From the NCBI GenBank assembly GCA_977017575.1, contig CDRNVI010000003.1:809254-873253 (forward strand): a DNA stretch of 64,000 nt, in the 5' to 3' direction. The translations under genes and the position numbers were made by a program. Positions 2,334-55,075 of the stretch are shown here, piece after piece. The notes under the pieces were generated by a model. The model ran no database searches and was not told the origin of the DNA. It saw only the letters and a list, made by a program, of their open reading frames with translations. Origin of the DNA: Paramoeba atlantica. Its lineage: Eukaryota; Protista; Discosea. Every line of letters begins with the position of its first letter. Position 1 is the first letter of the stretch.

Positions 2334-2394
2334 CTTCTCCCCCCTTATTAATCGCAAAAAAAAAAAAAAAAAAGGAGTGTCTTTTTCTTAGTCT

Positions 2395-3333: not shown

Positions 3334-3369
3334 AAAAGGAGTGTGCCAAAAAAAAAAAAAAAATTGGCC

Positions 3370-3570
3370 GCAAGCACATAACGAAGCGGTTAAAACGTTA
3401 TACGAAGCACAAGTACCGATTTCACAACCATATACGTATGTCCCAAGAATCTCACATTCTGGCGCCATCAAGAGAGATTTGATGTGTGGTTTCTACCAGG
3501 TACCGCTCTCATATGAAGCGCGGGCGTTCTACCGATTTAAATATCGCGGTATGGTATACACAACAGCGCA
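3370..3570 (+). pseudogene. VIPER-like RT fragment
   Basis: AIKRDLMCGFYQVPL..FYRF matches KRDLACGFWQV / KRDLSCGFYQV in the elements at 35207 and 47251. Confidence 0.75.
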
Positions 3571-3574
3571 AACA

Positions 3575-3896
3575 TGAACATCAGAAAAAGTGTGGAACCA
3601 GCTCCTTTCCTATTACCTCGGGTATTTTGCAAGGGGATGTGCTGGCTCCGTATTTATTTATCATGGTTCTCGATCGCATCCTTCACGCGGCATTGAAAAA
3701 TAAAGATGATGGACTAACGCTGAGCTCCGCCGGAACCAGAAAACGTGGATATAAATCAACACGAGTGACTGATATTGATTACGCTGATGATTTGATCCTG
3801 TTTTCCGACTCCAAACGTTCATTAGAAAGGATGGTCGACAGCGTCGCTACTGAAGCATCCAAAGCTAATTTGAGTATAGCCGCTGGAAGCGTGTAA
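3575..3896 (+). pseudogene. Non-LTR RT fragment (family unassigned)
   Basis: GILQGDVLAPYLF and DYADDL RT motifs. Confidence 0.75.
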
Positions 3897-3899
3897 TAG

Positions 3900-4663
3900 G
3901 TAGCAGTGGATGTGTAAAGCTGCTTGAGGCAGCTTTTCTTCATTTACGAGAGTTAACTGCGGATCTCAGCTTAGATATCAATTTCCGGAAATGTGAGTGG
4001 TTCCAGAAGGCCCCTCCCTGTGCTACCCAACCACTTCCATTAGAATCTTTGGGGGTAAACTTTCGGACGGATGCCATTAAGATTCTTGGTGCTTACATTG
4101 GCGCCGACCAGGTGGTAGAAAGTTTGCTTCTTCAAAAACTCGAGAAACACAAATGTCTGTTCCGCAGACTCCTAAAGATGGGTCCGAGCAACCTCTCACT
4201 GGCCATTTTGCGACGCTGTACAATTCCGCGACACGATTATCATCTCCGTGTACACAGACCGAATGCCACTCTTCATTTAGCGCAGGTTTTCGACACAGAG
4301 GTGGGTAAGGTCTTGGAAAAGTGGTGCGGAGCTGACTCCAATGCTTTGCAACTCGCAGCACTTCCAAAAAAATTTGGTGGTTTAGGTATCACATCCACGA
4401 TTCTGAAACACAAGTACTTCTTTGAAGCTGCCCAAACATCTATCGAAGAGCACCCAAAACCCATTAACGCTCCGGTAGGTTATAAAGGTAGCGACAAAGG
4501 TCAGAAGAAAATGCAGGATCGAAAAGAGGTGGCACGAAAACTTCTGAAGAAGAACTTAAACACGGAGTATGAAAAGCAAGTCGCAGAACTTAAGAAACAT
4601 TCGCATTTAGAGCTCATTCTGAACCGAAGCAAAGAAGCGAACTTACATTTAGAGAGTAAGTAA
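3900..4663 (+). pseudogene. Gamma CRE-like RT thumb/linker fragment
   Basis: IKILGAYIG..KLEKHKCLFRRLLKMGPSNLSLAILRRC homologous to 26366-26861. Confidence 0.8.
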
Positions 4664-9070: not shown

Positions 9071-9693
9071 GCATTTTTTTTTTTTTGAATTTTTTATCTA
9101 CTTTTCGAACACTTTCGCACACTTTTCACACTTCACCGTACTTACTCTCCCCACTTCACTGTACTTACTCCCCACTTTCCACACTTTCCCTTAACCCTCT
9201 CATCCATCCCCGTCCTTACCCCCTACCCTATACCGACTCGTCCGCGCGAGCGCCCATGTGGTCCAGAGCCTCCGCTCCCACCCCGTTAGCAGTATCAGAT
9301 ACTTTGTGTTGCTGTACGAGGGTGGGAGACGTGGAGGTAACGAAGCGCAAAGACGCCGTCGCGCCAAGGGCAAAAAGCGGGAAGAGAGACATGGCGGGAC
9401 GGACGCGGAGACGAGGGAAAACGACGCCGCAGCCCATCCGTCTGGAACTCTGCCCCCACCCCGTGAGCAAGTATACAATACTTTGGGCTGCTGGCACGGG
9501 GGTGGGGGACGCAAGAGAGAAAGACAGAAGAACAACGAGCGCGCAGAGGCGGGAGGAAGAGGTGGGGAGATATGACGCGAGGGGATGATGGGATGAGAGA
9601 GGGAGGGGGGATGCCGGCAACAGAGTGAGAATTTGAGGGGGGTGCCCTCCCATGGTCCAGAAGATGTTGTAGGAAAGAAAAGGAGAAATAATT

Positions 9694-9731
9694 CAACAAG
9701 GTACAGAAACTGTATCTTTATCGTTAAAGTT
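9694..9731 (-). other. Full 38-nt spliced-leader (mini-exon)-like sequence, preceded by a second copy of its first 12 nt (9732-9743)
   Basis: AACTTTAACGATAAAGATACAGTTTCTGTACCTTGTTG shares the GATACAGTTTCTGTAC core and TTG end of kinetoplastid SLs; it is not followed by a GT donor. Confidence 0.85.
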
Positions 9732-9756
9732 ATCGTTAAAGTTTTTTTTTTTTTTT

Positions 9757-17202: not shown

Positions 17203-17958
17203 ATGAATGACCTCCCCCCACTATCTGACTCTCGCATTGGACGGTTTGTGGCCGAGAGTCAGGTTGGCGACACTATCGCGGTTTTATGGTCCTCAGACAA
17301 AGTGCCACGTGGAGAAATGTGGAAGGGAGTGGTGAAGAAGATTGGCGAAGAGAAAACAACTATGTTGGTGGACTATGCGAAATTTGGCGAGCTTACGTTT
17401 CCTCCGACGAATGCTCGATTACATGGGGTGGAGAAACTCGCCACTGACCCTTACTCCGCTGCGATGGAGCGTGTTGAAGGCCGAGAGACTGGAACGTTCG
17501 AACCGCTTGAATTATCTACGTACGCGATGTTCATCGAGGCACCCTCGGAGACGCGAGATCGTAGTTTTGTGGAATTGGACGCTCATTTGCGTCGCTACTT
17601 TGGTATTGGAGCTGCCGAACGCAATGCCCCACGCTATCACCAAGACGAGCATCGGAAGAACGATTTGTTGCTAGCATTTTTGGCTTGGGTGCGAAACTCA
17701 ATGAAAATGGGACTTGTATGGAAATCAGACGGGAACATGGCGGTCGGGGACAACATATTGGCGGCGTTGGTTGCTTACAAAGTTCGCGTTCAACATGGGG
17801 ACTGCCGCGTCTTCGCACAGGCTCTTGAAGAAGCAAAAACGACCGGGGGACTGCGGGGAAAAATTCTACCTGCAATGATCAAAGCCATGGATACAAAAAA
17901 CGACCGAACAGGGCGAAACGCGGGCCCGATGACAAAACCGCAAGGGAAAAAATTCTGA
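17203..17958 (+). CDS. Gag-like ORF of VIPER/TATE-like element D
   Basis: First ORF of a gag-YR-RT/RH cassette; N-terminal Tudor/SH3-like barrel pattern; no CCHC seen. Confidence 0.65.
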   Translation: MNDLPPLSDSRIGRFVAESQVGDTIAVLWSSDKVPRGEMWKGVVKKIGEEKTTMLVDYAKFGELTFPPTNARLHGVEKLATDPYSAAMERVEGRETGTFEPLELSTYAMFIEAPSETRDRSFVELDAHLRRYFGIGAAERNAPRYHQDEHRKNDLLLAFLAWVRNSMKMGLVWKSDGNMAVGDNILAALVAYKVRVQHGDCRVFAQALEEAKTTGGLRGKILPAMIKAMDTKNDRTGRNAGPMTKPQGKKF

Positions 17959-18054: not shown

Positions 18055-19203
18055 GTGAAGAATATTCTGGAAATATATTTATTAAGGGGCATAAAAAATC
18101 AATTTCAAGAAGAGGGAAACGAAACATACGGAAATCAAACGGAAACCACAACCGGCGCCGGCACTACCAGTCATGTCCGAAGTACTCAGTACAAGCAACC
18201 TTCCACGAGCAACAGGGCTGTTACAGGGATAGTAACAAGATCAAGAGCAAAGAACTTACTGGAGATCGAAGACCTCTTCCTCGACCGCGTGGAAGGCAAC
18301 AGAGAAACAAAAGCCGCGATTCCTACAGTCGACGTTCAACAAATGATCGTTCTAGGCCAGGATCGTCTATTAGAAGAGAAATCCAACTCGCGCTGGAATC
18401 ACCTTTCCAGCGTGTACAAACAGTATACAGTTTGGAAGGAAAACCTCGGAAACGACGTTCCAAGCGAAGATTGGTGCATAATATGCTTCTTGGAGTCGAA
18501 AATGAGACTAATCAATCCGCAAACTCAACGGGGTACCATCAGCATCCAAACCGCACATACGTATGCAAAGAGTCTGATACAAATCATATTCCGATCTGGG
18601 GGTCAATTGCAAAAGTCGACAGTAACAGCCTATATGCGATCCCTTCAGCGTCAAGGGGCTCAAATACCGGAGCATCAGGCGCCCCCGGCTACACGCGAAC
18701 AAGTATTGGAGGCGTGCGAATGGCTGCTTCCGGACGAAGCCGCGGGCCTGACCTTGGCGTGGAAGACATGCAGCAGAATAGACGATGTCAAACATCTGAG
18801 GAAATTAGATTTACAAGTGGTAGATCTCGAGCGGAGAATACTGGGAGTAACGTTTCCGACTCACAAAGGGGATCCCTTCAGAGTAGGGACTGCTATTCCA
18901 ATGACTTGCAACTTGACGGAGTGGAAAATCTTCATGGACCAATTGGACAAGCTGAAGCCAGAAGACAAGTTCACGACTTTATCGACGCTGAGAGCCAATG
19001 CCGTGCTGAAGCGGGTGAAAGTAGAGTTGTCGGCACATTCTGTAAAAAGAGGGGCTCTAGTATCACTCCTCAGAGAGGGAGTTCCACTGTCGGTAATACA
19101 GCTGTTGGCCAAGCACAAAGATCTGGAGACATTGTGGATATATCTCCCTCGACTGGAAGTGGCCTTGTCCCTAGGGCTACAGGACGCGACAAAATTACTG
19201 TGA
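18055..19203 (+). CDS. Tyrosine recombinase of element D (frame open from 17959)
   Basis: LAWKTCSRIDDV (R), HSVKRGA (HxxR), AKHKDLETLWIY (H..Y) catalytic residues. Confidence 0.85.
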   Translation: MKNILEIYLLRGIKNQFQEEGNETYGNQTETTTGAGTTSHVRSTQYKQPSTSNRAVTGIVTRSRAKNLLEIEDLFLDRVEGNRETKAAIPTVDVQQMIVLGQDRLLEEKSNSRWNHLSSVYKQYTVWKENLGNDVPSEDWCIICFLESKMRLINPQTQRGTISIQTAHTYAKSLIQIIFRSGGQLQKSTVTAYMRSLQRQGAQIPEHQAPPATREQVLEACEWLLPDEAAGLTLAWKTCSRIDDVKHLRKLDLQVVDLERRILGVTFPTHKGDPFRVGTAIPMTCNLTEWKIFMDQLDKLKPEDKFTTLSTLRANAVLKRVKVELSAHSVKRGALVSLLREGVPLSVIQLLAKHKDLETLWIYLPRLEVALSLGLQDATKLL

Positions 19204-20957
19204 ACCCAGAAAACACCAAAGGACATGACAAGAAAACTAAATCAGCGGTTTACATACTAAAACGTCAATTACAAGGTAGGTTCCCCTTGCACATCGGTAA
19301 GATCACGCTAGACAGCGATAACATTATAGGCGAACCGAATCCCGAACCTATCTACGTGCATAATTCAACGGACATTGCTAACATTGCAACGAAGAAAATT
19401 GAAGACACAAACAATCAGTCTATGTCTCGCGGGCAGCTCACCCGACCACCGAGCGTGCGAGCGTACAAAAATCAGGGAATAATAGCTCCTATCACAACCA
19501 CAAGACTGTCATATTCTATACTGAACAATATGAATGACGATGGCAGCCTAGACTTTTTACATCTACTACAGAACGTCAACGCCTTTCACGCGCACATGCT
19601 GCGTGCACCTAAAGGCAATCGACCAGTGTCTCGATTTATGAGACATCATTTACCAGACTTATTACGCATGGGGGTTGTAGAGAAGACCGAAGGACCGATA
19701 GTAGTACATCGTACCTTTACAGTTCCGAAGAAAGACTCCACACTTCGTCTAATCTGCGATTGTAGGAAACTCAACCGAGTTTTCGAATGCCCCCCCGCAA
19801 TGCACCTACCATCCATACATAACGTGATTGAAAATCTGCTAGATTCGGAATGGATGGCTCACGCGGACGCACGGAGTTACTTTTACCAATTCTCCCTCGC
19901 TCCCGAGATCCGATCCTACTTTGGAGCGGTTTTAGGTCACGCTAGAGGAGAAACATGCAGTATTCAATTTTCTTCCATGCCCATGGGATGGTCATGGGCC
20001 CCGGCTATTGCACAGCGAGTTTCAAATCGCATTGTCCGGGACATTGGATTGGCCTGGGTAGACAATTTTCTTTTGTTCGGAAAATCCAAGTCAGAAGTAG
20101 AAAACCATGCAAAAGAATTTCGCGCCCGAGTCCACGCAGTTCAACTAGAAGTAGATGATCTCACCATGAAGCCACTACAGCAAGCGTGCGTACTTGGTAT
20201 TGAATTTGATCTAAAAAATAAGAAGTACCGCATGTCAGAAAAGTGGACTGAAAAGGCGTATTCAAGATACAATGACATAATCGGGAATGGGACGTGGACA
20301 GCTGTGGAACTGTATACGCTTTCTGGTTTACTAATGTGGAGGGCCACGGTTATGAAAATCCCACTATGCACTTTTGCACACCTTCTTCAAACACTAGGAA
20401 AAGTTGCCAGAAAAGTGCACGACGAAAAGTCTTGGGAGATCTCCTTCTCTCCGACCGACCACCTGTTAGGCGAACTGACTGATGCATTTTCCGCACTCAA
20501 GCGAAATGTTTGGTTAAAAAAGATAGGTCATATACCCAAAGAAGAAAAGGTGGAAGTTTGGACTGATGCCAGTTCAATCGCATGGGCTATTCTGTTGTTC
20601 AATCAAGGCATTCTCGAAACTGCAAAACAGGGCATGACAAAGCCCGGAGCCCATATATTCTACTCAGAGCTGAGTGCGGCTCTTGGTGGAATTATGGCAG
20701 CAGTCAGAAAAGGACATCGGGACATTCTATTGAACGTCGACAACGCGCCTGTGGCCATGTCCCTCCAGAGGCGGGCAAGCACTAACTTCACTGCCAATAG
20801 GTGGATGCAGTACATCCCATCAAACACTAACCTGGAAGTAAAGTGGGTACCTACCAACGCCCAAATAGCAGATCCCTTCACGAGAAAATCCAGCGCTGAA
20901 GACTTGACACCACTGCCCTCCATCGGTACTTATATTGAGAGCCTACGGCGCCCGTAG
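18432..20957 (+). CDS. RT-RNase H (pol) of element D; frame open from 17829, overlapping the whole YR ORF
   Basis: FTVPKKD..RLICDCRKLN, DARSYFYQF, MPMGWSWAP, WVDN; RNase H WTDAS, SEL, VDN, IADP. Confidence 0.9.
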   Translation: MEGKPRKRRSKRRLVHNMLLGVENETNQSANSTGYHQHPNRTYVCKESDTNHIPIWGSIAKVDSNSLYAIPSASRGSNTGASGAPGYTRTSIGGVRMAASGRSRGPDLGVEDMQQNRRCQTSEEIRFTSGRSRAENTGSNVSDSQRGSLQSRDCYSNDLQLDGVENLHGPIGQAEARRQVHDFIDAESQCRAEAGESRVVGTFCKKRGSSITPQRGSSTVGNTAVGQAQRSGDIVDISPSTGSGLVPRATGRDKITVNPENTKGHDKKTKSAVYILKRQLQGRFPLHIGKITLDSDNIIGEPNPEPIYVHNSTDIANIATKKIEDTNNQSMSRGQLTRPPSVRAYKNQGIIAPITTTRLSYSILNNMNDDGSLDFLHLLQNVNAFHAHMLRAPKGNRPVSRFMRHHLPDLLRMGVVEKTEGPIVVHRTFTVPKKDSTLRLICDCRKLNRVFECPPAMHLPSIHNVIENLLDSEWMAHADARSYFYQFSLAPEIRSYFGAVLGHARGETCSIQFSSMPMGWSWAPAIAQRVSNRIVRDIGLAWVDNFLLFGKSKSEVENHAKEFRARVHAVQLEVDDLTMKPLQQACVLGIEFDLKNKKYRMSEKWTEKAYSRYNDIIGNGTWTAVELYTLSGLLMWRATVMKIPLCTFAHLLQTLGKVARKVHDEKSWEISFSPTDHLLGELTDAFSALKRNVWLKKIGHIPKEEKVEVWTDASSIAWAILLFNQGILETAKQGMTKPGAHIFYSELSAALGGIMAAVRKGHRDILLNVDNAPVAMSLQRRASTNFTANRWMQYIPSNTNLEVKWVPTNAQIADPFTRKSSAEDLTPLPSIGTYIESLRRP

Positions 20958-28641: not shown

Positions 28642-29670
28642 ATGTCTGGAATCGTCCAAGCTGTTACTAGGGCAATTTCACGATCTAGAGCAAACAGCCC
28701 TGAGCCTCAAGCTCCGGAGCCCCAGGTTTCCCGACATAGCCGACGAGGCGGTACCCTCAACCCTGACCAGGTTGAAGCCCTCCTTGGAAACGATGTACGT
28801 TTGCCGATGACGGATGATGCGAAATATGAATTTGCTCATAAGATGCGATTGCTTCTCTCTCGAGGTCATAAGGTTTGGATTCAGGCAGTATGGGGCCACA
28901 AGGAAGAGACCGAGCAATATACAGTAATCGGCCAAGTGTACTTGAAAAATCGCAATGACCCTGACCACTCAGAATTAAAGGCGCGTTGGGATGATGAACA
29001 AGATATGGAGTACAGCTTCCCGTTCCCAGATATTGACTATTACTCATTGGCGATTGCTAAAGTACAAGCTCGGATGCCAAGCGGTGAGCGAGTTGAGCAT
29101 CTTCCTTCTGTAGACCGTTTGACCATCTCTGATCCCAAGAACTTCTCTCCCATTGAACCAAAAACATGGGGTCCATGGATAGAATCCCCAGATGAGTTTA
29201 AGCCACGGGAACTGGTGCGAGAGCTCCGCGATACGAAAGAATACGGCGTACGGTTCAATCCTCCGCTTGTTCGGGAACGCTTATTCGAAATGCTCGTTCA
29301 GTGGATTTATGCGGCGCGCAAGTTGGCAGAATGGACAGACGAAAACTTCTACAACATAGCTAAGATCATTATAGAGGAGCTAAGAAACCATTATTGGGCT
29401 GCGGCCGGCGCTCCAGTTGAGAAAGTACAGCAGCGACTTCACCAGGTGAAGAACCCTGACGACACCTATGGACGTATTATGCTAGAGGAAACTTCAAAGC
29501 AGTCTCGTCGGGTACGTGCGACCCAGCCTCCGCTGTGCTTCAACTGTCGCATGCCTGGGCACTTGCGGGCCAATTGTCCACGTTTAAAGGATTTTCACCG
29601 GGGGGTGGCGAGTGGCGGTACGAAGACACCTGTGAGCTACACTCGTGCCGAAAGACGAACGATCCACTAG
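28642..29670 (+). CDS. Gag of VIPER-like element A
   Basis: CFNCRMPGHLRANC CCHC knuckle; homologous to the gags at 34104 and 46388. Confidence 0.88.
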   Translation: MSGIVQAVTRAISRSRANSPEPQAPEPQVSRHSRRGGTLNPDQVEALLGNDVRLPMTDDAKYEFAHKMRLLLSRGHKVWIQAVWGHKEETEQYTVIGQVYLKNRNDPDHSELKARWDDEQDMEYSFPFPDIDYYSLAIAKVQARMPSGERVEHLPSVDRLTISDPKNFSPIEPKTWGPWIESPDEFKPRELVRELRDTKEYGVRFNPPLVRERLFEMLVQWIYAARKLAEWTDENFYNIAKIIIEELRNHYWAAAGAPVEKVQQRLHQVKNPDDTYGRIMLEETSKQSRRVRATQPPLCFNCRMPGHLRANCPRLKDFHRGVASGGTKTPVSYTRAERRTIH

Positions 29671-30341
29671 GAAACGTTCCCCACCCCGAAAACAACTACT
29701 CGTGCTCCTGCCTTATACAAAAGGCGGGAGAACTTACCAGGCTATTTTACACGTTCATCTCCAAGTTATGTATGGAACGGTGTGCGATATGTCAGCACAC
29801 TGCGGAATGCGCAGCAAATACTCGTGACTCAAACAATGAGTCAAACAAACACTACAGGTACGGGTCGAACTCAAAAGAGGATAAATCGTCCCGCAGGACA
29901 CCAAACGGACCTATCAGGCCCCTTAGCGAAAACAAGAAGGTTGAACTTGACGTGCCAACTCCTCCGTATGGATCCAAACGACGCGCTGGCGCCGGCTCTT
30001 CAGAGGGCAGTATATCCGATGTGGACGGAAACGACGTGGGCCACAAGGGAACGTATTTGGATGCGACTAAACGAGTTCTGCGAGAAAAGAAGCATACGTC
30101 CAACTGCGCTGCACGCAATATTGTTTCTGGATTCCCTAAGCGTTGCGGTAACGACGCGGCTAGCCTACACAAGAAGTCTACACACCATTTACACATGCAT
30201 AAACGAGGACAACACCCCTCTCAAGCTATACTCGAAGGCACTACAAGCGCAGGGGGGGCTGGAGCCACAACGTCAGATGGAGCCACTGACCCCGTATCTG
30301 CTACGGAAATTGTGCAGCAGGATAACAGTCTCACAGACCAT

Positions 30342-33170: not shown

Positions 33171-34104
33171 TTTTTTATTAAGACAACGTTTTTTATTAAG
33201 ACAACGTTTTTTATTAAGACAACGTTTTTTATTAAGACAACCTTTTTTATTAAGACAACGTTTTTTTATTAAGACAACGTTTTTTATTAAGACAACGTTT
33301 TTTATTAAGACAACGTTTTTTATTAAGACAACGTTTTTTATTAAGACAACGTTTTTTATTAAGAAAACGTTTTTTATTAAGACAACGTTTTTTATTAAGA
33401 CAACGTTTTTTATTAAGACAACGTTTTTTTATTAAGACAACGTTTTTTATTAAGACAACGTTTTTTATTAAGACAACGTTTTTTATTAAGACAACGTTTT
33501 TTATTAAGACAACGTTTTTTATTAAGACAACGTTTTTTATTAAGACAACGTTTTTTATTAAGACAACGTTTTTTATTAAGACAACGTTTTTTATTAAGAC
33601 AACGTTTTTTATTAAGACAACGTTTTTTATTAAGACAACGTTTTTTATTAAGACAACGTTTTTTATTAAGACAACGTTTTTTATTAAGACAACGTTTTTT
33701 TATTAAGACAACGTTTTTTATTAAGACAACGTTTTTTATTAAGACAACGTTTTTTATTAAGACAACGTTTTTTATTAAGACAACGTTTTTTATTAAGACA
33801 ACGTTTTTTATTAAGACAACGTTTTTTATTAAGACAACGTTTTTTATTAAGACAACGTTTTTTTATTAAGACAACGTTTTTTATTAAGACAACGTTTTTT
33901 ATTAAGACAACGTTTTTTTATTAAGACAACGTTTTTTATTAAGACAACGTTTTTTATTAAGACAACACTTTTTATTAAGACAACGTTTTTTATTAAGACA
34001 ACGTTTTTTATTAAGACAACGTTTTTTATTAAGACAACGTTTTTTATTAAGACAACGTTTTTTATTAAGACAACGTTTTTTATTAAGACAACGTTTTTTA
34101 TTAA
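33171..34104. repeat. Tandem array of 18-bp unit ATTAAGACAACGTTTTTT, ~52 copies
   Basis: Direct reading; a few 19-bp or substituted units; no spacers. Confidence 0.95.
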
Positions 34105-35336
34105 TGCATTTTAATAAAGAATGGCCGGAGGCGTTCGGACCGTTCGGGGCTTTGTTGGCGGTCAAACAAAGACTTCGATCGGCCACGTGTTGTCGAGGAA
34201 ACCTGTTCTTGCCCCCGCAGCGGGAATGGGGAGTAGCCAAACTCCGACCGCGTGCCCTGTTTCGAATGACCAATCTTATGGTCCCTACTAAACGTTTCGC
34301 TATTACTTGGTGCAAGTCGTATGATGAATGTACGAGGCCTCCCAACCCTGTCGATCCGACCCAACCCTGTCGATCTCCCAACCCTGTCGATCCGAGTCTG
34401 CAATACGGGGGACAACGTACGACGCTGAACCCGGAGCAAGTGGCGGCTTTGCTTAGGGGGGGAACAGGCTCTGCAGCGATGTCTGACGAGGATAAGGCGG
34501 AATTCGCGCAAAAAGTCCGGACTTTGATCCTTAAGGGTTACGATGTGTCTGTAGAAGCCGTGTGGGGTCACCATGGGGATGCAGTGCGCGAAACTGTGAT
34601 TGGCAACGTTCGTCTGAAATCCGACGATTCAGGAGGCATTGAAGCCGTTTGGAACGATGATCCCGGCATGGCATACGACTTTCCTTTTCCAGACATCGAA
34701 TATTATTCGTTGGAAATTACCCGGGTGCGAGCAAAGATGCCTGGAGGGCGCAAAGCGGACGAAGAACCTAAGACTCCTAATGCGCCTATCACCGATCCGG
34801 CTCGTTTCACCGCAAACGATCCTCTAACATGGGGCCCGTGGCTAGAATCCGAGGATGAGTTACGCGTACGAGACCTTATCCGTGATTTACGCGTCCATCC
34901 TGAATTTGGTTTGTTACTGAACGCTCCTCCTATCCGTGAACGTCTATTTAAAATAGTCCAAGAGTGGATCCAAGCGGCACGAGTTTTTCCCCTATGGCGA
35001 GAGGAACATTTTCTCGAAATCGTACGCACAGCCATCGAAGAACTGCGAAACCACTATTGGGCCTCATCCGGAATTCAAGTCGAACGTGTACAATTAAAAC
35101 TCTACAAGGATGATGACACTAAGGATGCGTACTCGAAGGCAGTTGCGGAGGAAAAGCTGCGCCACATGAGTGTTTCAAAAATCGCCACTAATCGCCCGGC
35201 CTTTCTTTGCTATCGATGCCACAAGCCAGGTCACTTTCGCGCCAACTGCCCATTAAATCAATCTTCTACGCGTTCGACCCCGGGTTTTCGGGGCGGGGTG
35301 ACGAGCGGCACAACAGGTGCAAAGAGGAGCCAATAG
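34104..35336 (+). CDS. Gag of VIPER-like element B (true start may be internal, e.g. ~34266)
   Basis: CYRCHKPGHFRANC knuckle; EELRNHYWA motif shared with A and C. Confidence 0.88.
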   Translation: MHFNKEWPEAFGPFGALLAVKQRLRSATCCRGNLFLPPQREWGVAKLRPRALFRMTNLMVPTKRFAITWCKSYDECTRPPNPVDPTQPCRSPNPVDPSLQYGGQRTTLNPEQVAALLRGGTGSAAMSDEDKAEFAQKVRTLILKGYDVSVEAVWGHHGDAVRETVIGNVRLKSDDSGGIEAVWNDDPGMAYDFPFPDIEYYSLEITRVRAKMPGGRKADEEPKTPNAPITDPARFTANDPLTWGPWLESEDELRVRDLIRDLRVHPEFGLLLNAPPIRERLFKIVQEWIQAARVFPLWREEHFLEIVRTAIEELRNHYWASSGIQVERVQLKLYKDDDTKDAYSKAVAEEKLRHMSVSKIATNRPAFLCYRCHKPGHFRANCPLNQSSTRSTPGFRGGVTSGTTGAKRSQ

Positions 35337-36856
35337 GCCAGGTTCCCCACCCCTTATATCGCTCGTGCCCGTCCATCAAGCAGGGTATTCCCCGGATGTC
35401 GGTTAAGAAGTTGAGAGAAATGATGAATGAGGCGACTGGTGATCGATTCGATGAGACATTGGAGACTTTATTACGTTTACCGGAACAGGCATCCACCATT
35501 CCGCTATATAAGTCGTTTTTGCCGCACAATGACATAAAGGAATTAGCAGCGGCGGGTTTCATTTCCAGAGTATCAGACGAAGAAGCTAAGGTGCGGCCGT
35601 CTTTGGATTGGGTGATACCTTTCACAGTTGTGGAACCTGGTGAACATGAACATTCCGAACGTCGTCGTTTTATAGCGTGGACGCAGGCAGATAATGATCG
35701 CATTAAGGAAATATATGAACCGTATGTCCCCGTTAGACATGCAGCGTATTATCTGCACCGCGCCAAAGAAGAAAGTGCCGTCAAACGGGATTTGGCGTGT
35801 GGGTTTTGGCAGGTCGCAATACCAGAGGAAAGTCGTCAAAAGTTTCGCTTTAAAGACGCAAAAGGGGATCTATACGAATTGACTGTAATGCCCATGGGGC
35901 ATCGGTGCGCTCCCGAGTTAATGCACACCTTGACAGCAACTCTAGCAGGTGACAGAAATTACTGTACCGAAAAGCACGCGTTCTTTTATTCCGGACTGGA
36001 CGTTTATATTGATGGTATCCGTTTTGCCGCGCGGGATGAGATAGCAAATAAGTACGCTCGTTTTGTGGATGATAGAGCAGACAGATTAAATGCCTTGTTT
36101 AAAGATCGTGGAGAGCCGCCCGCACAGATTTACACATTCAATGGAATCAAGTATTTTCACAGACAAGGGAAAGTGGCTTTAGGAGACAAAATTTCGCGGC
36201 GATTGCGACAGGATGACTTTGCTGCAGCCACTTATGCATCTTTGGAATCGGGGGTAGGCCGCCTTATTTTCGCCTCCGCTGTAATGGGTGTTCACCTTCC
36301 TCACTATCACTTGGAAATGAAAATTGTTCGTCGTCGGATTAATAATCTAAATCGCGACCCTACTTTGCTGGATAAGCCCGTTTCCTTACCGACACCGGTG
36401 CGAATCGCACTTTCGGAGTGGCGAGATAAGCTGTTGTATAAAACTCCCGTCGATCCACCTCCACACCCAGACACGGTGCCGCATAACCATATTTTGTGTA
36501 CAGACGCATCCTCTACGGGATGGGGTGCGGTCCTGTATTTGGATTACGGGCAAGTCGTTTGTGCTGGGTCGCGGTGGCCACCTGTTTTTGAGTATGAAGT
36601 CAATCGCGCAGAGGCACGCGCCGTTCGCCTCGCCTTTGGAAAATTTGGCCATCACTTTGGTAGGGATACGTGTGTAGATGTCTTCGTTGATAACACTTCC
36701 TGCGTCGCGGCATTAAATCGTAAGATGTCTAATTCGGATGGTATTACGTCGGAGCTTCGCCGTTTGTTGGATTATTTAAAGCGTAAAGGGTTGGTCGTTA
36801 AAGCCCAGTATATTTGCTCGAAGGAAAATCCTGCCGATCCGTACAGCCGCATGTAG
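35207..36856 (+). CDS. RT-RNase H (pol) of VIPER B, intact, in the -1 frame relative to gag; no YR present
   Basis: PFTVVE, RRRFIAW, KRDLACGF, MPMGHRCAPE, YIDG; RNase H CTDAS, EVNRAE, VDN, ENPAD. Confidence 0.9.
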   Translation: MLSMPQARSLSRQLPIKSIFYAFDPGFSGRGDERHNRCKEEPIGQVPHPLYRSCPSIKQGIPRMSVKKLREMMNEATGDRFDETLETLLRLPEQASTIPLYKSFLPHNDIKELAAAGFISRVSDEEAKVRPSLDWVIPFTVVEPGEHEHSERRRFIAWTQADNDRIKEIYEPYVPVRHAAYYLHRAKEESAVKRDLACGFWQVAIPEESRQKFRFKDAKGDLYELTVMPMGHRCAPELMHTLTATLAGDRNYCTEKHAFFYSGLDVYIDGIRFAARDEIANKYARFVDDRADRLNALFKDRGEPPAQIYTFNGIKYFHRQGKVALGDKISRRLRQDDFAAATYASLESGVGRLIFASAVMGVHLPHYHLEMKIVRRRINNLNRDPTLLDKPVSLPTPVRIALSEWRDKLLYKTPVDPPPHPDTVPHNHILCTDASSTGWGAVLYLDYGQVVCAGSRWPPVFEYEVNRAEARAVRLAFGKFGHHFGRDTCVDVFVDNTSCVAALNRKMSNSDGITSELRRLLDYLKRKGLVVKAQYICSKENPADPYSRM

Positions 36857-46387: not shown

Positions 46388-47380
46388 TTGTTTTTCATGT
46401 CGCACCAGTTGTTTGGCACTCCTGGTGCCCCTGAAGGGATTGAGTCAGGGATCGAACAAGTTCTAAGTACGGACCAAGTTGCGAATTTGTTGCGAGACGG
46501 AAATGGAGTTGATCCCATGACTGAGAATGAAAAACAACAGTTCTCCAAGAAAGTTAGGACTTTGCTGGAGAAGGGATTTAAGGTGCAAATACAGGCAACA
46601 TGGGCCGAGCGCGGTGAAGATGTGAATCAAACTGTTGTGGGTAAAGTATACCGTAAGAAGGCGAAAAACAGTGATGAGTTTGATATTTGGGCCCTGTGGG
46701 AGGATGGTCCTGACAATGAGTATGAGTTCCCCCATCCGCTGATTGACTATTTCGCACTTTCTATCGTTAAAATTTACAAGGCGATGCCAGGTGGACAGCC
46801 GCGTGATGAGCAGCTAGCTGCGCTGGAAGGAATGCAAGTTCGTGACCCATCTAAGTTTTCTTCATTTGTTCCTTTGACGTGGGCGGCTTGGATCGACTCT
46901 CTGGATGAATTTAAGCCGCGAGAGCTTGTTCGTGAGCTGCGTGAAACTCCGGAGCTGGGAGTTCGCTTCAATCCTCCGGCACATCGTGAGCGCTTGTTTG
47001 CCATATTGGTAAAGTGGATTTATGCAGCTAGAGTGATGGAAGGATGGAAAGATGAGCAATTCATTTGTATCGCGGAAATGCTCATCGAAGAGCTTCGAAA
47101 TCATTATTGGGCAGCAGCGGGAGCTCCTGTAGAACGTGTTCAGCAGCGCCTTCACAAGGATGATGATCCTCAGGATCGTTACGGACAAATCATGACAGAG
47201 GAACAGCTGCGTGTGAATCGCCTACCACGGGTTGTGAAAGGAGCGCGTGTATGCTACAATTGTCGCCAAACTGGTCACGTTCGCGCTCAATGTCCTCGTT
47301 TGCAAAGCGGGGCACCACAACCGGTTTTTCGTGGGGGGGTGGCGAGCGGCGCCCAGACGGGCGTAAGACGCACACAATAG
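46388..47380 (+). CDS. Gag of VIPER-like element C
   Basis: CYNCRQTGHVRAQC knuckle; EELRNHYWAAAG. Confidence 0.9.
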   Translation: MFFMSHQLFGTPGAPEGIESGIEQVLSTDQVANLLRDGNGVDPMTENEKQQFSKKVRTLLEKGFKVQIQATWAERGEDVNQTVVGKVYRKKAKNSDEFDIWALWEDGPDNEYEFPHPLIDYFALSIVKIYKAMPGGQPRDEQLAALEGMQVRDPSKFSSFVPLTWAAWIDSLDEFKPRELVRELRETPELGVRFNPPAHRERLFAILVKWIYAARVMEGWKDEQFICIAEMLIEELRNHYWAAAGAPVERVQQRLHKDDDPQDRYGQIMTEEQLRVNRLPRVVKGARVCYNCRQTGHVRAQCPRLQSGAPQPVFRGGVASGAQTGVRRTQ

Positions 47381-50059
47381 GATTTGTGCCCCACCCCGAC
47401 AAATGCTCGTGCCCGACCGTTGAGGATACGGCGGGTGAACTTACCAGGCTCTTCTCCGAATTCATCTTTATTCTTGCGAATGGAAAGTGCAAGTGCAGTG
47501 GAAAGAACGGATTTACCGAGACTTCAAATTCGGAGGGGAAAACACGTGTTCGGAACGGCAGCGCCTTTGGCAAGGGAACAAACGAGATCAAACCTTTTAT
47601 GCGATATACTCGGACTCAACCCAAAGGATCCGCACGGTCAGATCGTTCGGAAAGCAATCGAGCCCATGTGGGCAACAAGTACGTGGGGAACGAGGGAGAG
47701 GCTGTGGCTCCGGATGCAAGACTTTTGTGCACAACGTCACCTATCTCAAAACGCGCTCAGTGCGGTCAGGTTCGTAGACTCATTGAAACTGGCGACGTCG
47801 ACACGACTGGCCTACGCAAGGAATCTGCAGACTCTTATTACGCTCATGGGGGCCGAAGCAACCCCATTGAAGATGTACGGAAAGGCGTTGCAAGCGCAAG
47901 GCGGACTAGAACCACAGAGACAAATGCTTGCAATTACTCCCGTCCTTCTAAGACGGTTGAGAAGAAGTCTAAAAACATCCGAGAGCATGACGGCTCTTTT
48001 GTGCTGGAAAACGGCAGCTCGTTGGACGGAAACGGCGGAACTTTCGACAGAACAGATATTAAAGGTTACTCCCGAAGAGGTGGTGATTTACTGGGGAAGA
48101 GCAACGAAGTCAACGAGAATGAACCCCTTTCGACCGTATATGTACGCGATTGTGACGGGCCCCGGAACTGCCGAGTTAGCGGACTACATGAGACGAATAC
48201 CCCAAGGGTGCAGAATGTGCTACACGGAGGTATCTCGAATGGACAGCAAAATACGCGAAATCTTGGGAAATGGCTATGGGACGCATTCAATAAAAAGGGG
48301 TGCAATCACGTGGCTGTTCCAGGAAGTGGCTCAAGGGAATCTAACGATATCAGAAGTTCAGAACATGACCAAGCATTTAAATGTCGAAAGTCTGTTAAGA
48401 TACAATGCAAACCAAGTAACGACGGCCAGAGCGCTCGGAACGCAACGTGTATCGGCGAGACTCCCGGCATGACAGCTGAACTGTTGGAGCAAGTTTACTC
48501 TGAGGTACCGTACTTGAAACGGCACTCGACTACTTGCGCGCGGCGCTCGTCTAAGCTGGCCACGGCAAAAGATTTTGAGATACCATTACACGTGAAAATG
48601 AATACACCTCTAATGGATCTAAAGGTAGTGAAAGGATGGATGGACTTGCCAACCAAGATGCGCTTTCAAAATGTTATGGACGAACTTCTACACGTTCCTG
48701 AAATAGCTGAAAAAGAGCCGAAGGGACTCAATTCTCTACCTGTGTCCGATATTGCGCTTCTTTTGAAGGCCGGTATCATTTCTCAAGTTTCTTCTGATGA
48801 ATTAGAGCGTCGTCCTACAGCTCAATTTATCATCCCGTTTACTGTAGTGGAACAAGACGAATTTGGTCACGATCGGAGGAGATTTATATCTTGGTCGCGC
48901 GGGGATAATGACCGGTTGAAAGATTATGTCCCTGATGTTCCCCTGCTTCATCCTAGTAAATATTTGCATCGAGTTGACGACGCTATAGGAGTGAAAAGAG
49001 ATTTGAGCTGTGGATTCTATCAAGTACCACTTCCTCTAGCTGCGCGTTGTAAATTTCGCGTTTCATCAAAAGGCCGTACTTATGAAATGAACGTTCTTCC
49101 GATGGGGCATAGGTGTGCCCCAGAAATCATGCATACGATAACTTCCGCCCTTGGGGGACTTATGTAGCGCTAAATCTGCTTTTACACGAGGAGCTATGGA
49201 TGTGTACGTTGATGGAGTTCGGTTTTCGGGAACTGTGGAACAAGCGCAGGAGTACGCACGCTTTGTGGATAAACGGTGCGATGAGATGGGAGGAAAATTC
49301 AAGGAGAAAGGCCATGACCCGACACAGCGCTATGTATTTAATGGAGTTCATTACGATCACGTCAATCACAAGGTCAGCCTGGGACCACGTGTGGTGCGTA
49401 AGTTGCAGAATGACAGATTTTACTCGTTAAGCTTCAAAGATCTGGAGGCGGCGGTGGGGCGCCTTCTGTACGCATCTGCTGTGCTTGGTATAGTCATTCC
49501 GCGATTTCATTTCGCTGTCAAGATTGTTCAGCGACGAATTAATTTGTTGAATCGATGTCCGTGGATAGGTAATAAGTCTGTTGACCTTCCACGAAAAACA
49601 CGTATTATTTTGGCACAATGGAGGGATGAGGTAGTATTGAATACTCCGATTAAAGCTCCACTTCATCCAGATTTCGTTCCTCACAAACATCGTCTTTACA
49701 CAGATGCTTCTCGCAAAGGGTGGGGAGGGATTCTGTATCTGGATACAGGAGAGGTTTTGATAACAGGCAAGCCATGGGAAGCCGGAACAACGTATGAAGT
49801 AAACAATGCTGAAGCTACGGCTGTAAGGTTGGCTCTTGAAGAATTCGGTAAGCATTTTGAAAGCGGAACGTGCCTGGATATTTTTGTGGACAACACTTCA
49901 TGTAAAGAGGCACTGAATAGGAAAACTTCTAAGTCGGACAATATTGCACGTCAATTGCGCATGGTTTTAGAGGAAGCGAAAAGGAAAGGGATACGCATTC
50001 AGGCACGTTACATTGCCTCGTCAGAGAATCCAGCAGACCCGATTAGCAGGAAATTTTAG
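47251..50059 (+). pseudogene. Pol of VIPER C (-1 frame, overlapping YR; one frameshift at ~49155)
   Basis: ORFs 47251-49167 and 49151-50059: KRDLSCGFYQ, LPMGHRCAPE, YVDG, YTDAS, ENPAD. Confidence 0.88.
47384..48472 (+). CDS. Tyrosine recombinase of VIPER C, in the gag frame after the TAG
   Basis: CWKTAARW, THSIKRGA, TKHLNVESLLRY catalytic motifs; uninterrupted. Confidence 0.88.
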   Translation: MCPTPTNARARPLRIRRVNLPGSSPNSSLFLRMESASAVERTDLPRLQIRRGKHVFGTAAPLAREQTRSNLLCDILGLNPKDPHGQIVRKAIEPMWATSTWGTRERLWLRMQDFCAQRHLSQNALSAVRFVDSLKLATSTRLAYARNLQTLITLMGAEATPLKMYGKALQAQGGLEPQRQMLAITPVLLRRLRRSLKTSESMTALLCWKTAARWTETAELSTEQILKVTPEEVVIYWGRATKSTRMNPFRPYMYAIVTGPGTAELADYMRRIPQGCRMCYTEVSRMDSKIREILGNGYGTHSIKRGAITWLFQEVAQGNLTISEVQNMTKHLNVESLLRYNANQVTTARALGTQRVSARLPA

Positions 50060-50361: not shown

Positions 50362-53300
50362 ATGTCACTCCACACCACTACCTCTGCCCCCCAGGCGCAA
50401 GGCGACCTCCCTCGAGGATCTGCTGGCGCAAAACCTTCACGCAAGCATACCTTCAACTTCACACAAAAAAGTGCGATTTCTGTAAAAATAAGACACTCAA
50501 CTTCCACATCATGGCTCTATTTCCCTGACATCCACGCGGCGGCTTGTTTTCTAACCAAGAAGAGGCACTTCAATGCCGAAATTTCAGCGGAACTTTCCTT
50601 AGCACGAACCCTTCGAAACAGGAGCAAAGCGGTCTGATGGTATATTAGTAGAAAAATGCACTTTACAAGACGTAATGAACGAGGAAGCATGCGAACATTT
50701 CGTATTCCGCGAAATTGCACCGCCACACAGGATATTCCGGCACACTAGCTGGGCGACAGCACACGCAGACGCATCTCTACAGCTAGATAAACAGTACTCT
50801 TGTCCTGGAACCCTTGGACGCGCCATCAAGAAGAAACTGGCTGGGAACAACATTTCGGGACTTGCGGCGTTCGACCTAACCCACGTCCACACTAAGGAAG
50901 TACACGATGAAGGCTCTTGGGAAAGAACTAGGATTGAGTACGGCGAACCTTTCCTGATCCGGAAGCCCAACCAGGCGGCGGCACAAGGAACGCGGACAGT
51001 GCGGCAACAACCTTGTGCCCACCGCTGCTTGAATAAACGCACCTGTCTCCACCCGTGTTGCAAAGTTGGGATGGAACCCGAGCTCACCAACAATCGTCCA
51101 GAGGAACCGGGTGGCCACGCACCAAACAGAAGTCATCCGCTGCCTCGTACAACGGACGAACCAACCCCCAACCACGAAGCTCGACCCAGCCGTACTCAAC
51201 CGTGTGCTCATCGATGTTTGAACAAGCGCATATGCCTCCACCAATGTTGCAAGATCAGTATTGACCCCGAACCTATGGACCACCCCTCACCTCACCCAGA
51301 TATGCAGAGAGCAGATAGTGCAATCCAAAAGTCTGATGCCAGGCCTGATGCTACACCATGGCTTCGAGATGAACAAACGTCTAGCACATGCGCGACACCT
51401 CGACGATCATGTAAACACATTTGCCAAAACAAGCAACAATGTAAGCACATGTGTTGCAAGATTGGGGTAAAGATCGACCCTAAAAGACTTGAATCCCTAA
51501 ACGAAGAAACAACAGTAATTGCCACCCCTCCCTCACCCGCCCCACGCACTCAGACACCGCCAGACAGAAATCTGCATCACATAACAAGGTCGGAAGAACA
51601 AGAACTCTCGCGCAGGCCCTGCAAGCACGTATGCCGCAACAAGGCTGAATGCAAACACCAATGTTGTAAGGAGGGAGTACTCAGCCGCCCTCAGGACGCT
51701 CGGCAGGAACCCACCCGCTGGAGCCTACGCAACCTCTTCTCGTGGAATCTGTCTAACAACGAGACAAACGGACAAGCACCTGCTGGTCACAGCGAAAGAT
51801 CCGTATCTTCTGAGCCCCAAAGACAGGTAGAAACCAAAATAGGCGCCGCACGGAGTTCACCACGAGATCAGCGCCACGAAAGACGCTCCACAAATGCCTC
51901 CGAAGAAACCCGCATCAATCAGTCTCCACGACAACCAGCACATCCACCGGTGAACAACGTAACCTCGGAACCAGCGCCAACCTTCGGAACTGAAAGTAAC
52001 ACACAGACGCTTACCCAGACTCTCCCACCGCGGGGCGGACCACGGCAGACCCACGGGCCGAATGACAGCACGATCCTGAACTCACAGAGGAATAGATCTC
52101 GAAATGAAAACGTATTAGACACCGAGACGGCTGAATACTTGTTAAGCACCATGCGTACGATCGAAGGAGGGCGGGTCATGATAAGCCTCTCACAGGACCA
52201 ATGGCAGCTGGCAATAAAGAAGGCCATGGATAGATGTAAAAAGTACTTAAAGCCTGCATCAACCCCGAGCGAAGCCCTACTACATACGGAATTACTGACA
52301 GCTTGCATGGCGGTCTCGGTTTATGAAGTTGTACGGGAACTCGACCCCACCAAAGGGTTCAAATTGCGCTCCAAAATTGGCCATGCGAAACGCCCCACAC
52401 GACCCCTTAGCTATGACCGCTCTGCGAAGCAACTAGCAGGACACATCCGTCAACTGAAACGTACTCTTTCCTTTACCCACGGACGCTCAGAAAGGGACCG
52501 CTTGATCGGCAACATAAAAGAAGCGACCAAAGCGCATAAGCTGTACACGGAAGAAGCGAAACTAGTCAAACAAGAACGAGAGAAACGCTGGATGATGGAC
52601 AGGTTCCAAAGAAACCCTTGGACAGCAGCCGGAGAGTGTCTTGACAAGAACGAGCAACTGGTAAATCAGCCGGCAACCTTTCCAGACTGCTCGCAAGCAG
52701 CTATCGAAACATTTTTCCAAGAATCGTTAAGCACAGACACGGAAGATCATAGTCTACCTCCAACAAACCTCCTTGGCCTGGATCTAGAGAATGCAATGGA
52801 ATGGGAAGCAATCGACGTACCAACCATAGCAGTGGCAATCTCCTCGAAACGCCCCTCGGCTGCCCCAGGCTCCGATACCGTGGGAAACGCATTTCTTCGA
52901 CGCTGCGAAGAGCTCTACCCGTTCATCGCGCAAGTCTTCAATGAAGTACTGAAGCATTCGGTCAGCCCTCCCTATTGGAAACAGGCCGTCACCCGACTCA
53001 TTCACAAAGGCGGAGCTCCCAACCAATTGTCCAACTGGAGACCCATCAGTCTTACGAGCTGCCTTGGTAAGTTACTCCACTCCATTATTGGCCACAGAAT
53101 CTTGAGCCATGCTGTGACGACAGGAATAATTGACACAACCATACAAAAAGGATTTTTGCCAAACGTAAATGGAACTATCGAGCATACCCAGTCACTCTGT
53201 GAACTATTGGACTTTCAACGACAGCATAAACGACAATACTGCCTTGGTCAATTTGACTTAAAGAACGCGTTTGGTTCTCTCCCACACTCCATTCTCTTTC

Positions 53301-55075
53301 AAGTCCTAACGTGGGCAAAGGTATCACCTCAAATCATCGCGTACATCCGCTCCCTATACCATGATGCGACTATCCGGATCAAATGTTCGGAAGGGCTGAC
53401 CAAACACATCCCCGTCAAACGAGGTGTTCTCCAGGGCGACACACTATCCCCCGTACTATTCAATCTCGCCATGGAAGTGGTTCTACGATATCTCCGATCG
53501 AGCTTCCCTAGCTATGGTATTAAATGGGGCAACCAAGAGTCGTTCTTAAAAGCCTTTGCAGACGATCTGGCTATCATCACGAACTCGGCTGAAGAAATGC
53601 AACACGTGACGAACGCCCTGGTGAACATGCTTTCCAGGTTAGGCATGCGCCTTAACGTACCGAAATGTCGTCTCCAACACATGTCTGTAGCAGAAGGCGG
53701 ATATAAGACCCACAGACCCCGTATCTTGGCATACGGTGAGAGTATTCCCAACGTTTGCGACAAAGGAAGTCAGTTCCTAGGTATGACACTCGCGCCGGGG
53801 GCCCAACAAGGGAAAGTACTGTTCAAAAGTCTCCTAAAGCAGCTACGATTTTGGTTGAACAATGTATCCAATAGTGCCCTAGATACCCCCGCTCGTCTCT
53901 GGGCCTATAATAACGTAATCATATCTCGCCTGCGATATGTGCTCACGGTCAATCCAGGAATCACACTAAACTTTATCCTTCGACTACAAAAATATGCGAC
54001 GAGACACATTCGAAAATGGATAAACATGGCCAAAACAGCTACGAGCGAAGTTCTGTACTCTGAACGCGGCTGGGCTCTCACCAGCCTGTCTAAGCTTTGG
54101 TTACTCTGCACAGGCACAGCAGTTGAACAGATGAAAAAATCTCGTGATCCAGCAGTGCAACAAGCGCTGAGATATCGCATCCGTCGTGAACACGACAAAC
54201 GTTCTTCCGGACAAGTGCGACCAGTCGTCGAGTTGTACGACCGCAGTGGAAATCACGCATCGACACGGCAGTACATTGAACATGAATACGAAAGACATCT
54301 CTCAGAAGCTGTGCAGCGTCGAGCACCAATCGCGGGGCAGTGGTTTCGCATGGCTACAGAAGACGACCTCGCGAAAGACTTCGCTGCTGCTCTGTGCAAT
54401 ATTAAAAGTACGTCGCTCTCCAGATTTGCTTCATCTGTTCTGACACAGACACCGCTTCCGACCCGATCCGCCTTACACCGCTGGGGCCTCAGTTCCCACA
54501 CGAACCGTAAATGCCCCACTTGCACAGAAGACGTACAAACTGTGCGCCACGTTCTAACAGGCTGCAAGGCCGCCCTGCAACAGGGGCGGTATACTTTCCG
54601 TCACAACCTCATTCTACACGCCCTTGCAGATGCTATTCGACAATCCCCCGAAACCGCACAGTATCACTTTGACCTCGCTCACCATCAGAATCCGCCAACC
54701 TGGCTGAGCGGGCAAGAAACGTCCCTCCGACCTGATGGATGGGTCCAACTTAAGAACGGTTCTGAGTTCATACTCGAACTGACATCTCCGTGGGAGGAAA
54801 ACTTTATCTCCTCACACGAACGGAAGATGCAGAAGTATGGACATATGTATCTACAACGGAAAATGTCGAACCCAGCCACTTTTCTCCTGGCCATTGAAGT
54901 AGGTGCCAGGGGAAAGCTCAACAGCTCAACTCGAGCACTGAACTCCCTTTTTGGTGGAAACAAGGCCACCGCCTCGCGATGTCGTCAGCATATGGTAACA
55001 AGAGCCCTTAGTGGCAGTTTCAAAAATTTTAATAATCGCGACATTGAGCAGTGGAGTGAGGGCACGTGCTGGTGA
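50362..55075 (+). mobile_element. Full-length RT-REL non-LTR retrotransposon (NeSL/R4/HERO-like); ORF 50675-55075 plus upstream ORF 50362-50637 (probable frameshift)
   Basis: APGSD, LIHKGG, WRPISL, QKGF, DLKNAFGS, GVLQGDTLSP, AFADD; CPTC..H...C, RHN, RPDG, ELTSPW, K..KY. Confidence 0.9.

Follow-up and report, generated by a model that had tools for sequence, protein, structure and literature searches.

We analyzed a 64,000-nucleotide (nt) stretch of DNA deposited as Paramoeba atlantica (GenBank assembly GCA_977017575.1, contig CDRNVI010000003.1, forward-strand positions 809,254 to 873,253; hereafter "the window", with positions counted from its first nucleotide), which carries on its plus strand three retroelement copies (A, B and C) that resemble the VIPER elements of kinetoplastids, and which also contains a fourth tyrosine recombinase (YR) retroelement (D). 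The gag-pol junction of these VIPER-like YR retroelements, whose host is presumably a kinetoplastid, most probably contains a programmed -1 ribosomal frameshift signal, through which a fusion of Gag with reverse transcriptase/RNase H (RT/RH) would be made. This reading is based on a slippery heptamer at a fixed distance from a conserved RNA fold that encloses the gag stop codon, on covariation in that fold among genomic copies, and on a -1 frame that is free of stop codons across the complete YR gene.

A conserved signal at the end of gag

A search with gag found 13 relatives, all of them in one European Nucleotide Archive (ENA) assembly that apparently represents the same genome as the window, and the contigs of eleven relatives were fetched for comparison. 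The signal is present in 14 places, which correspond to about 10 distinct sequences and about 7 subfamilies with gag identities of 45-76%. In every copy the gag phase reads nnG GNU UUY, followed by a spacer that is always 6 nt long and variable in sequence; the subsequent GGGGUG(G)...(C)CACCCC is invariant in all copies. The codon in the ribosomal P site would be GAU, GGU or GUU, or AUU in one decayed lineage, and the residues encoded by the heptamer differ by subfamily (K-D-F, P-G-F, P-V-F, T-V-F, Q-D-F, Q-I-F). As the residues vary while nnG GNU UUY stays, it is the nucleotide pattern rather than the peptide that is conserved. Just upstream of the site, about two thirds of the gag third positions differ between subfamilies, whose synonymous sites are largely saturated, and conservation of the signal is thus not merely a reflection of recent ancestry. 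In A, B and C the heptamers share the phase of the gag CCHC zinc-knuckle frame, and 0.00 chance occurrences of the pattern GGGGTGNCGAG-N30-60-CACCCC are expected in the window (the loop of element A exceeds the length that this pattern allows). An original prediction, made from the letters of the window alone, had placed heptamers, spacers and stems at the end of these three gag genes, and all letters and coordinates were confirmed (Table 1). The lineage represented by copies L008 and L009 carries the heptamer G_AUU_UUU (L008:5744-5853, L009:1648-1758); in L008 the -1 frame contains 11 stops across the YR open reading frame (ORF) and RT is broken, and its fold is still the most stable (z -4.0).

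Folding each copy singly gave the same architecture throughout, i.e., a stem S1 that closes a three-way junction with two hairpins, H1 and H2. The gag stop codon UAG, always followed by G, lies at the apical loop of H2 in all copies. Both hairpins differ by subfamily in sequence and in length with their pairing kept: on a MAFFT alignment (A1), standard pairs were found in 95% of cells, as compared to 38-49% when the 3' partners were slid by 1-3 columns, and changes on both sides of a pair were found for 6 pairs (15 cells), as compared to 1-3 pairs when slid. These pairing and covariation values were reached by none of 500 shuffles, although the structure was derived from the same sequences on which it was evaluated, which favors it, and these sequences are paralogous. 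The covariation across further genomic copies is that of H1 and H2; for example, H2 pair 70/91 occurs as four pair types and is paired in all 10 sequences. At gathering scores, the window gave no match to any Rfam family.

Overall, these data establish the S1, H1 and H2 architecture computationally, as a predicted structure. The original prediction had described a three-stem pseudoknot with a single hairpin in the long loop between its stems; the hairpins it named are present, as is S1, but the loop does not hold one hairpin only. A second covarying hairpin, H2, encloses the gag UAG, so that the core is a three-way junction. The remaining pseudoknot stem (S2), which would be formed by the junction strand CGAGY and a downstream RCUCG, is plausible, though the evidence for it is weak. 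RCUCG is located 7-10 nt 3' of CACCCC in A, B and C, and CGAGY/RCUCG pairs in 8/10 sequences (the eight with letters at all five pairs). One S2 position covaries (CG in five, UA in three), with U:A in the clade of A, L004a and L008 and C:G elsewhere, a distribution that is most simply read as one double change. Predicted proteins spanning the transframe peptide were also searched for additional S2 states, and only P0026, from a C-like copy, reached the PHP motif. On these sequence comparisons S2 has moderate support, and we consider its formation about as probable as its absence.

Openness of the -1 frame across the YR gene

The -1 frame is the RT/RH frame in A, B and C, as originally predicted. 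In the intact copies L002, L003 and L006, the -1 ORF extends without a stop from the heptamer to the RT/RH C-terminus (941-946 codons; 946 in L002, a near-identical copy of A), and the frame-0 YR ORF, with 363-387 codons overall and 374-387 in the four YR-bearing lineages where it is intact, lies wholly inside it. Across the YR ORF, the -1 frame contains no stop codon in four lineages (L002, L003/L006, C and L004a), as compared to 12-17 expected (13.6 for element C); a count of zero was reached by 0 of 2000 codon shuffles. The +1 frame of the same ORF has 19-24 stops, and the -1 frame of gag has 19-31, as its composition predicts. Of the 65-83 YR codons that start with AA, AG or GA, none follows a codon with T as its last base.

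The phase of substitutions indicates selection on the gag frame upstream of the heptamer, on the YR frame only across YR, and on the RT (-1) frame beyond it. Together with the absence of stops, this YR-frame-only pattern argues that the -1 frame over YR is kept open without amino acid constraint. Openness without protein conservation is what would be predicted for a linker that is traversed by frameshifted ribosomes. In element B, which has no YR gene, gag is connected to RT/RH in the -1 frame through only about 60 codons. The claim that Pol is made as Gag-Pol through a frame of about 400 codons overlapping YR is supported by every sequence-level test run.

About 45 codons past the heptamer, an 11-nt block (CTTACCAGGCT) is conserved in the lineages of A, C and L004a (29730-29760 and 47430-47460; also in L001 and L004), where it encodes a conserved peptide in both frames, i.e., LTRL in frame -1 and NLPG in frame 0. 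Only in the -1 frame are the A/C substitutions at this block synonymous. Across the peptide AGELTRLF, which this frame encodes, A and C differ at three sites, each a third codon position of the -1 frame; the original prediction had noted differences at synonymous third positions only.

The YR ORF itself follows in the gag frame right behind UAG-G (47378-47384 in C, 29668-29674 in A, and in the YR-bearing copies among L001-L008), with no conserved AUG near its start and the first methionine 30-55 codons in. From this arrangement, YR would seem to be produced by read-through or in some other non-standard way. Reassignment of UAG was ruled out, as ORFs of 940-1466 codons, found in the window and in the fetched contigs, lack in-frame stops altogether.

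Proposed mechanism and alternative explanations

In the proposed mechanism, ribosomes translating gag would arrive at G_GNU_UUY such that the P site is occupied by GNU and the A site by UUY, and would meet, 6 nt downstream, a stable fold in which S1 (GGGGUGG/CCACCCC) closes the three-way junction with H1 and H2. A pseudoknot may additionally form through pairing of the junction strand CGAGY with RCUCG. Most ribosomes would unwind the fold and terminate at the UAG in the H2 loop, yielding Gag, and a fraction, after slipping back by one base, would translate the -1 frame over 17-26 codons of the gag tail and about 400 codons of YR into RT/RNase H. The overprinted codons would represent an unconserved linker that is merely kept open (about 60 codons in the YR-less lineage B), and the product would be a Gag-linker-RT/RH fusion whose ratio to Gag would be fixed, as it is in retroviruses. 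The present analysis shows the sequence features, their conservation and covariation, the continuity of the ORFs and selection for an open -1 frame, whereas the slippage itself, its efficiency and the fate of the fusion protein are inferred.

Several observations weigh against this reading. All copies come from one genome, so the covariation is one among paralogous subfamilies with few independent events. S1 and the U-run of the heptamer never vary and hence carry no information on pairing, and their invariance could in part reflect dual coding (frame 0 encodes GGVASG, and frame -1 encodes GGGE...PHP...SC). Fold z-scores from shuffling are modest for G+C-rich RNA; they range from -2.0 to -4.0 in six copies, with -2.66 for C and only -1.24 for B, and are significant only in aggregate. 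Re-pairing in the P site is non-canonical for GAU, GUU and AUU (two of three positions), with the A-site half of the heptamer canonical; heptamers of plant RNA viruses resemble them in this respect. Four sequencing runs of unclassified type contain the sequence, and the only RNA-labelled run of the organism, a small one, contained nothing from element C. With regard to S2, the compensatory change of the original prediction is present but represents a single event, and it fails in the L003 group, where CGGGC faces ACUCG with a C.A mismatch and the connecting loop across S1 has only 4 nt. Moreover, CUCGUG is invariant and also protein-coding, and RNAalifold prefers to pair the junction strand with the 3' arm of H2, a pairing that has covariation of its own (8/10 sequences paired at the informative position).

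RT/RNase H could instead be translated alone, either through reinitiation or from an AUG inside the ORF on a separately trans-spliced mRNA, with the letters at the end of gag being purely coding. The original prediction had itself named a separate AUG for pol as an alternative, monocistronic mRNAs are routinely produced by trans-splicing in kinetoplastids, and the dual coding of S1 could account for its invariance. AUG codons do occur in the -1 ORF; however, none is conserved, none is located upstream of the heptamer in five lineages, and the first one downstream is 38-133 codons away (seven copies). Translation of RT/RH on its own also provides no reason for some 400 stop-free upstream codons across YR in four lineages, and it leaves unexplained both the covarying H1 and H2 and the fixed 6-nt spacing to a heptamer whose residues vary; we regard it as improbable. 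Quite improbable, too, is that the fold serves another purpose (UAG read-through to give Gag-YR, packaging or dimerization, or recognition by the recombinase or RT) and that the U-run is incidental. The position of the UAG in the H2 loop and the fact that YR, wherever it is present, follows UAG-G immediately and in the gag frame would suit such a purpose, and packaging structures do exist in retroelement RNAs. On the other hand, the larger part of the fold precedes the UAG on its 5' side and would have been opened by the time a ribosome arrives there; known read-through stimulators, such as that of murine leukemia virus (MuLV), lie 3' of the stop. Element B retains the entire signal without a YR gene, heptamer pattern and spacer are conserved despite changes in the encoded residues, and the -1 frame is kept open from exactly the heptamer onwards. 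A second role of the fold in UAG read-through, alongside frameshifting, is possible.

A change of frame at the RNA level, through polymerase slippage on the run of four to five T and hence mRNAs with one base more or less, could be suggested by the homopolymer at the site and by the A8 found at the equivalent place in a Crithidia fasciculata VIPER; it would need neither a fixed spacer nor a downstream structure, and appreciable transcriptional slippage is known from longer runs than the 4-5 U present here. This explanation appears highly improbable. Programmed -1 frameshifting thus remains the preferred reading. An extension of it, which we put forward tentatively and rather doubt, is that one RNA would give three proteins by two recoding events at a single fold, and that this arrangement would be common to VIPERs across kinetoplastids. 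Termination would yield Gag, slippage into the -1 frame at G_GNU_UUY would yield Gag-linker-RT/RH, and read-through of the UAG-G in the H2 loop would yield Gag-YR; the ratios would be set by the fold or by a switch between the three-way junction and an extended S1. If so, frameshifted ribosomes would pass over an entire gene (YR) in a different frame.

Elements in the window and comparison with known systems

Table 1. Positions of the retroelement genes and of the frameshift signal components in the window
Element	Feature	Positions	Strand	Remarks
A	gag ORF, 342 amino acids (aa), CCHC zinc knuckle	28642-29670	+	UAG at 29668-29670, at the H2 apical loop
A	Additional in-phase U_UUA_AAG	29583-29589	+	1-nt overlap with the main heptamer; absent from other subfamilies
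A	Heptamer G_GAU_UUU, gag phase	29589-29595	+	Letters confirmed
A	Spacer CACCGG, 6 nt	29596-29601	+	
A	Three-way junction	29602-29687	+	S1 29602-29608/29681-29687; H1 29616-29650; H2 29657-29679; z -2.29
A	S1 core GGGGTG/CACCCC	29602-29607/29682-29687	+	
A	Candidate S2 arms CGAGU (junction strand)/ACUCG	29609-29613/29698-29702	+	
A	-1 frame downstream of heptamer, 254 codons	29589-30353	+	Truncated in the window copy
B	gag ORF, 410 aa, CCHC	34104-35336	+	UAG at 35334-35336
B	Heptamer G_GGU_UUU, gag phase	35282-35288	+	Canonical X_XXY_YYZ
B	Spacer CGGGGC, 6 nt	35289-35294	+	
B	Three-way junction	35295-35353	+	S1 35295-35300/35348-35353; H1 35308-35320; H2 35326-35346, UAG in loop
B	S1 GGGGTG/CACCCC	35295-35300/35348-35353	+	
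B	Candidate S2 arms CGAGC/GCUCG	35302-35306/35361-35365	+	
B	-1 frame ORF, 549 aa	35207-36856	+	RT/RNase H directly; no YR gene between
C	gag ORF, 330 aa, CCHC	46388-47380	+	UAG at 47378-47380
C	Heptamer G_GUU_UUU, gag phase	47323-47329	+	
C	Spacer CGTGGG, 6 nt	47330-47335	+	
C	Three-way junction	47336-47397	+	S1 47336-47342/47391-47397; H1 47349-47364; H2 47373-47388, UAG in loop
C	S1 core GGGGTG/CACCCC	47336-47341/47392-47397	+	
C	Candidate S2 arms CGAGC/GCUCG	47343-47347/47405-47409	+	
C	YR-like ORF, 363 codons, gag frame	47381-48472	+	Directly behind UAG; fully nested in the -1 ORF
C	-1 frame ORF, 638 aa	47251-49167	+	Transframe linker over YR, then N-terminal part of RT
C	Rest of RT/RNase H	49151-50059	+	Out of frame in the window copy
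D	gag; YR (gag frame); RT/RH (-1 frame)	17203-17958; 18055-19203; 18432-20957		Unrelated YR retroelement

A CCHC zinc knuckle terminates each of the three gag proteins, and signatures of RT and RNase H were identified in the -1 ORFs. In A- and C-type elements, the ORF that follows the gag stop shows the conserved motifs R...HSIKRGA...KH...LLRY and is homologous to the equivalent ORF of element D (E 7e-13), which in turn matches Phage_integrase with 25.2 bits, below the cut-off of 27.1. On the basis of this homology and this near-cut-off match, we accept the ORF as a probable YR, with the sub-cut-off score as a caveat; the A/C-type ORF itself had no sequence match in Pfam or the Protein Data Bank (PDB), and an AlphaFold2 model from six sequences was too poor for use (mean predicted local distance difference test score, pLDDT, 49.6). 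A resemblance of the RT to that of Trypanosoma cruzi VIPER was noted by eye, and the assignment to VIPER rather than TATE would follow from architecture, i.e., from the order gag-YR-RT/RH and the reading frames. RT/RH matches in databases were unnamed, and dozens of RT/RH clusters exist for this organism. As regards the split direct repeats that mark VIPER termini, no direct repeats of at least 40 nt were found in L002:3600-11077, where the ends of the element are unmapped.

Two further sequencing runs of this organism gave assembled contigs in which 8 extra nt (TCACAGTG) are present behind position 49162. By arithmetic, this insertion would bring 49151-50059 into the frame of the element C -1 ORF, and the window version of C would thus be either broken (as an allele or a copy) or misassembled. 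An intact ORF of 1466 aa (50675-55075) that closely follows element C on its downstream side belongs to a CRE/SLACS-like non-LTR (long terminal repeat) retrotransposon and carries an RT as well as a C-terminal CCHC plus restriction-like endonuclease motif. The minus strand of the window also contains, at about 9690-9745, a sequence that resembles a spliced leader (AACTTTAACGATAAAGATACAGTTTCTGTACC...) and includes the kinetoplastid core CAGTTTCTGTAC (near 9690-9735), which may point to a kinetoplastid host. It has its first 12 nt duplicated and adjoins a poly(A) tract, which fits a CRE/SLACS-type insertion into spliced-leader-derived sequence.

Element D has an in-phase A_AAA_AAC (17895-17901) located 18 codons before its gag stop and followed by the 6-nt spacer GACCGA. 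Its -1 frame is open as well, and no significant RNA fold was detected downstream of this heptamer (z +0.4). Scans of metagenomes with an RT/RH profile found no relatives, and scans with the RNA motif gave no match. A Logan contig of run SRR22388240 (protein P0029) encodes a 36%-identical RT/RH in the -1 frame relative to an upstream ORF of 260 aa, which ends 4 nt inside the RT ORF.

The consensus of T. cruzi VIPER (ORF1 169-1509, YR 1510-2517, RT/RH 1386-4214; PMC5146736) shares the arrangement described here, i.e., YR follows in the ORF1 frame behind the stop, and RT/RH is in the -1 frame and overlaps the final 124 nt of ORF1 and all of YR. Canonical VIPER also has the order gag-YR-RT/RH and a CCHC box in gag. 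We read T. cruzi and C. fasciculata copies (PMC6681497, supplementary file 10) by eye. In the T. cruzi Dm28c copy MBSY01000682.1, the gag tail (CCA TCA AAA AAC GGC CGA GGG GCT GCC G) contains an in-phase A_AAA_AAC, followed by a 6-nt spacer (GGCCGA) and a perfect 10-bp stem (GGGGCUGCCG/CGGCAGCCCC) that is extended by CGCC/GGCG and has the UGA stop in its loop; the -1 frame is free of stops through YR to the RT motifs. The C. fasciculata copy CfaC1_21 has an in-phase A_AAA_AAA, a spacer of 6-7 nt and a stem-loop (GGGC.CGG.CUCG/CGAG.GCCGA.GCCC), again with UGA in the loop and a -1 frame that is open to RT. In these published elements the heptamers are located 7-9 codons before the gag stop. They differ from the elements of the window in the heptamer (A_AAA_AAC or A_AAA_AAA, as compared to G_GNU_UUY), in the stop codon (UGA, as compared to UAG) and in the stimulator, which is seemingly one long bulged hairpin of unrelated sequence rather than a three-way junction; no similarity between their gag and that of the window elements was detectable by the search used. 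These comparisons show a frameshift logic that appears general to VIPER, in letters that are not homologous.

Gag-pol -1 frameshifting is well known as a kind of signal; what would be new is its presence in YR retroelements of a presumed kinetoplastid, a three-way-junction stimulator that holds the gag stop, and a linker of about 400 codons that overprints a nested gene. A literature search found no frameshift signal described in VIPER, TATE or DIRS-type elements and no paper on programmed frameshifting in trypanosomatid retrotransposons, in agreement with the original prediction; the original VIPER paper (Lorenzi et al. 2006) was outside its reach. One review states that ORF overlaps are not usual in VIPER, and one VIPER paper describes overlapping ORFs and invokes alternative start sites. 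A conserved frameshift signal would answer how VIPER and related YR retroelements express their overlapping ORFs, a question that had been left open, and would most likely explain how RT is produced despite the intervening gene. Judged from the T. cruzi and C. fasciculata copies, this answer probably extends to all of VIPER, T. cruzi with its thousands of VIPER/SIRE copies included. It would also supply a natural -1 frameshift cassette for kinetoplastids, organisms of unusual mRNA biology, and the frame of about 400 codons would be a clean example of selection on openness alone, i.e., of a frame kept open over another gene without amino acid selection.

Among known systems, the heptamers of the window elements belong to the G_GNU_UUU class of luteovirus, dianthovirus and umbravirus sites, in which the frame-0 stop is likewise located near or inside the stimulatory structure. 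Barley yellow dwarf virus (BYDV) has G_GGU_UUU, and red clover necrotic mosaic virus (RCNMV) and pea enation mosaic virus 2 (PEMV-2) have G_GAU_UUU. These plant viruses differ in being plus-strand RNA viruses whose stimulator needs a long-distance interaction with the 3' end (such a partner was not sought here), and there is no homology. If S2 forms, the topology would be that of the three-stemmed coronavirus pseudoknot, i.e., an H-type pseudoknot with extra helices between the 5' arm of S2 and the 3' arm of S1; unlike in coronaviruses, two hairpins are inserted, the frame-0 stop lies inside the structure, and the candidate S2 has only 5 bp and weak support. Compared to gag-pol frameshifting in retroviruses and LTR retrotransposons, the window elements have no protease and no DDE integrase, a YR gene in frame 0 is interposed with a linker of about 400 codons, and the host is presumably a kinetoplastid. 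Mouse mammary tumor virus (MMTV) and human T-cell leukemia virus (HTLV) combine A_AAA_AAC with a pseudoknot, and human immunodeficiency virus type 1 (HIV-1) combines U_UUU_UUA with a stem-loop. In these retroviral and LTR-retrotransposon systems, as in the elements described here, a heptamer near the end of gag is followed by a short spacer and a downstream structure, with a CCHC motif in the Gag tail, and the proposed product, a Gag-Pol fusion made at a fixed ratio, would be the same.

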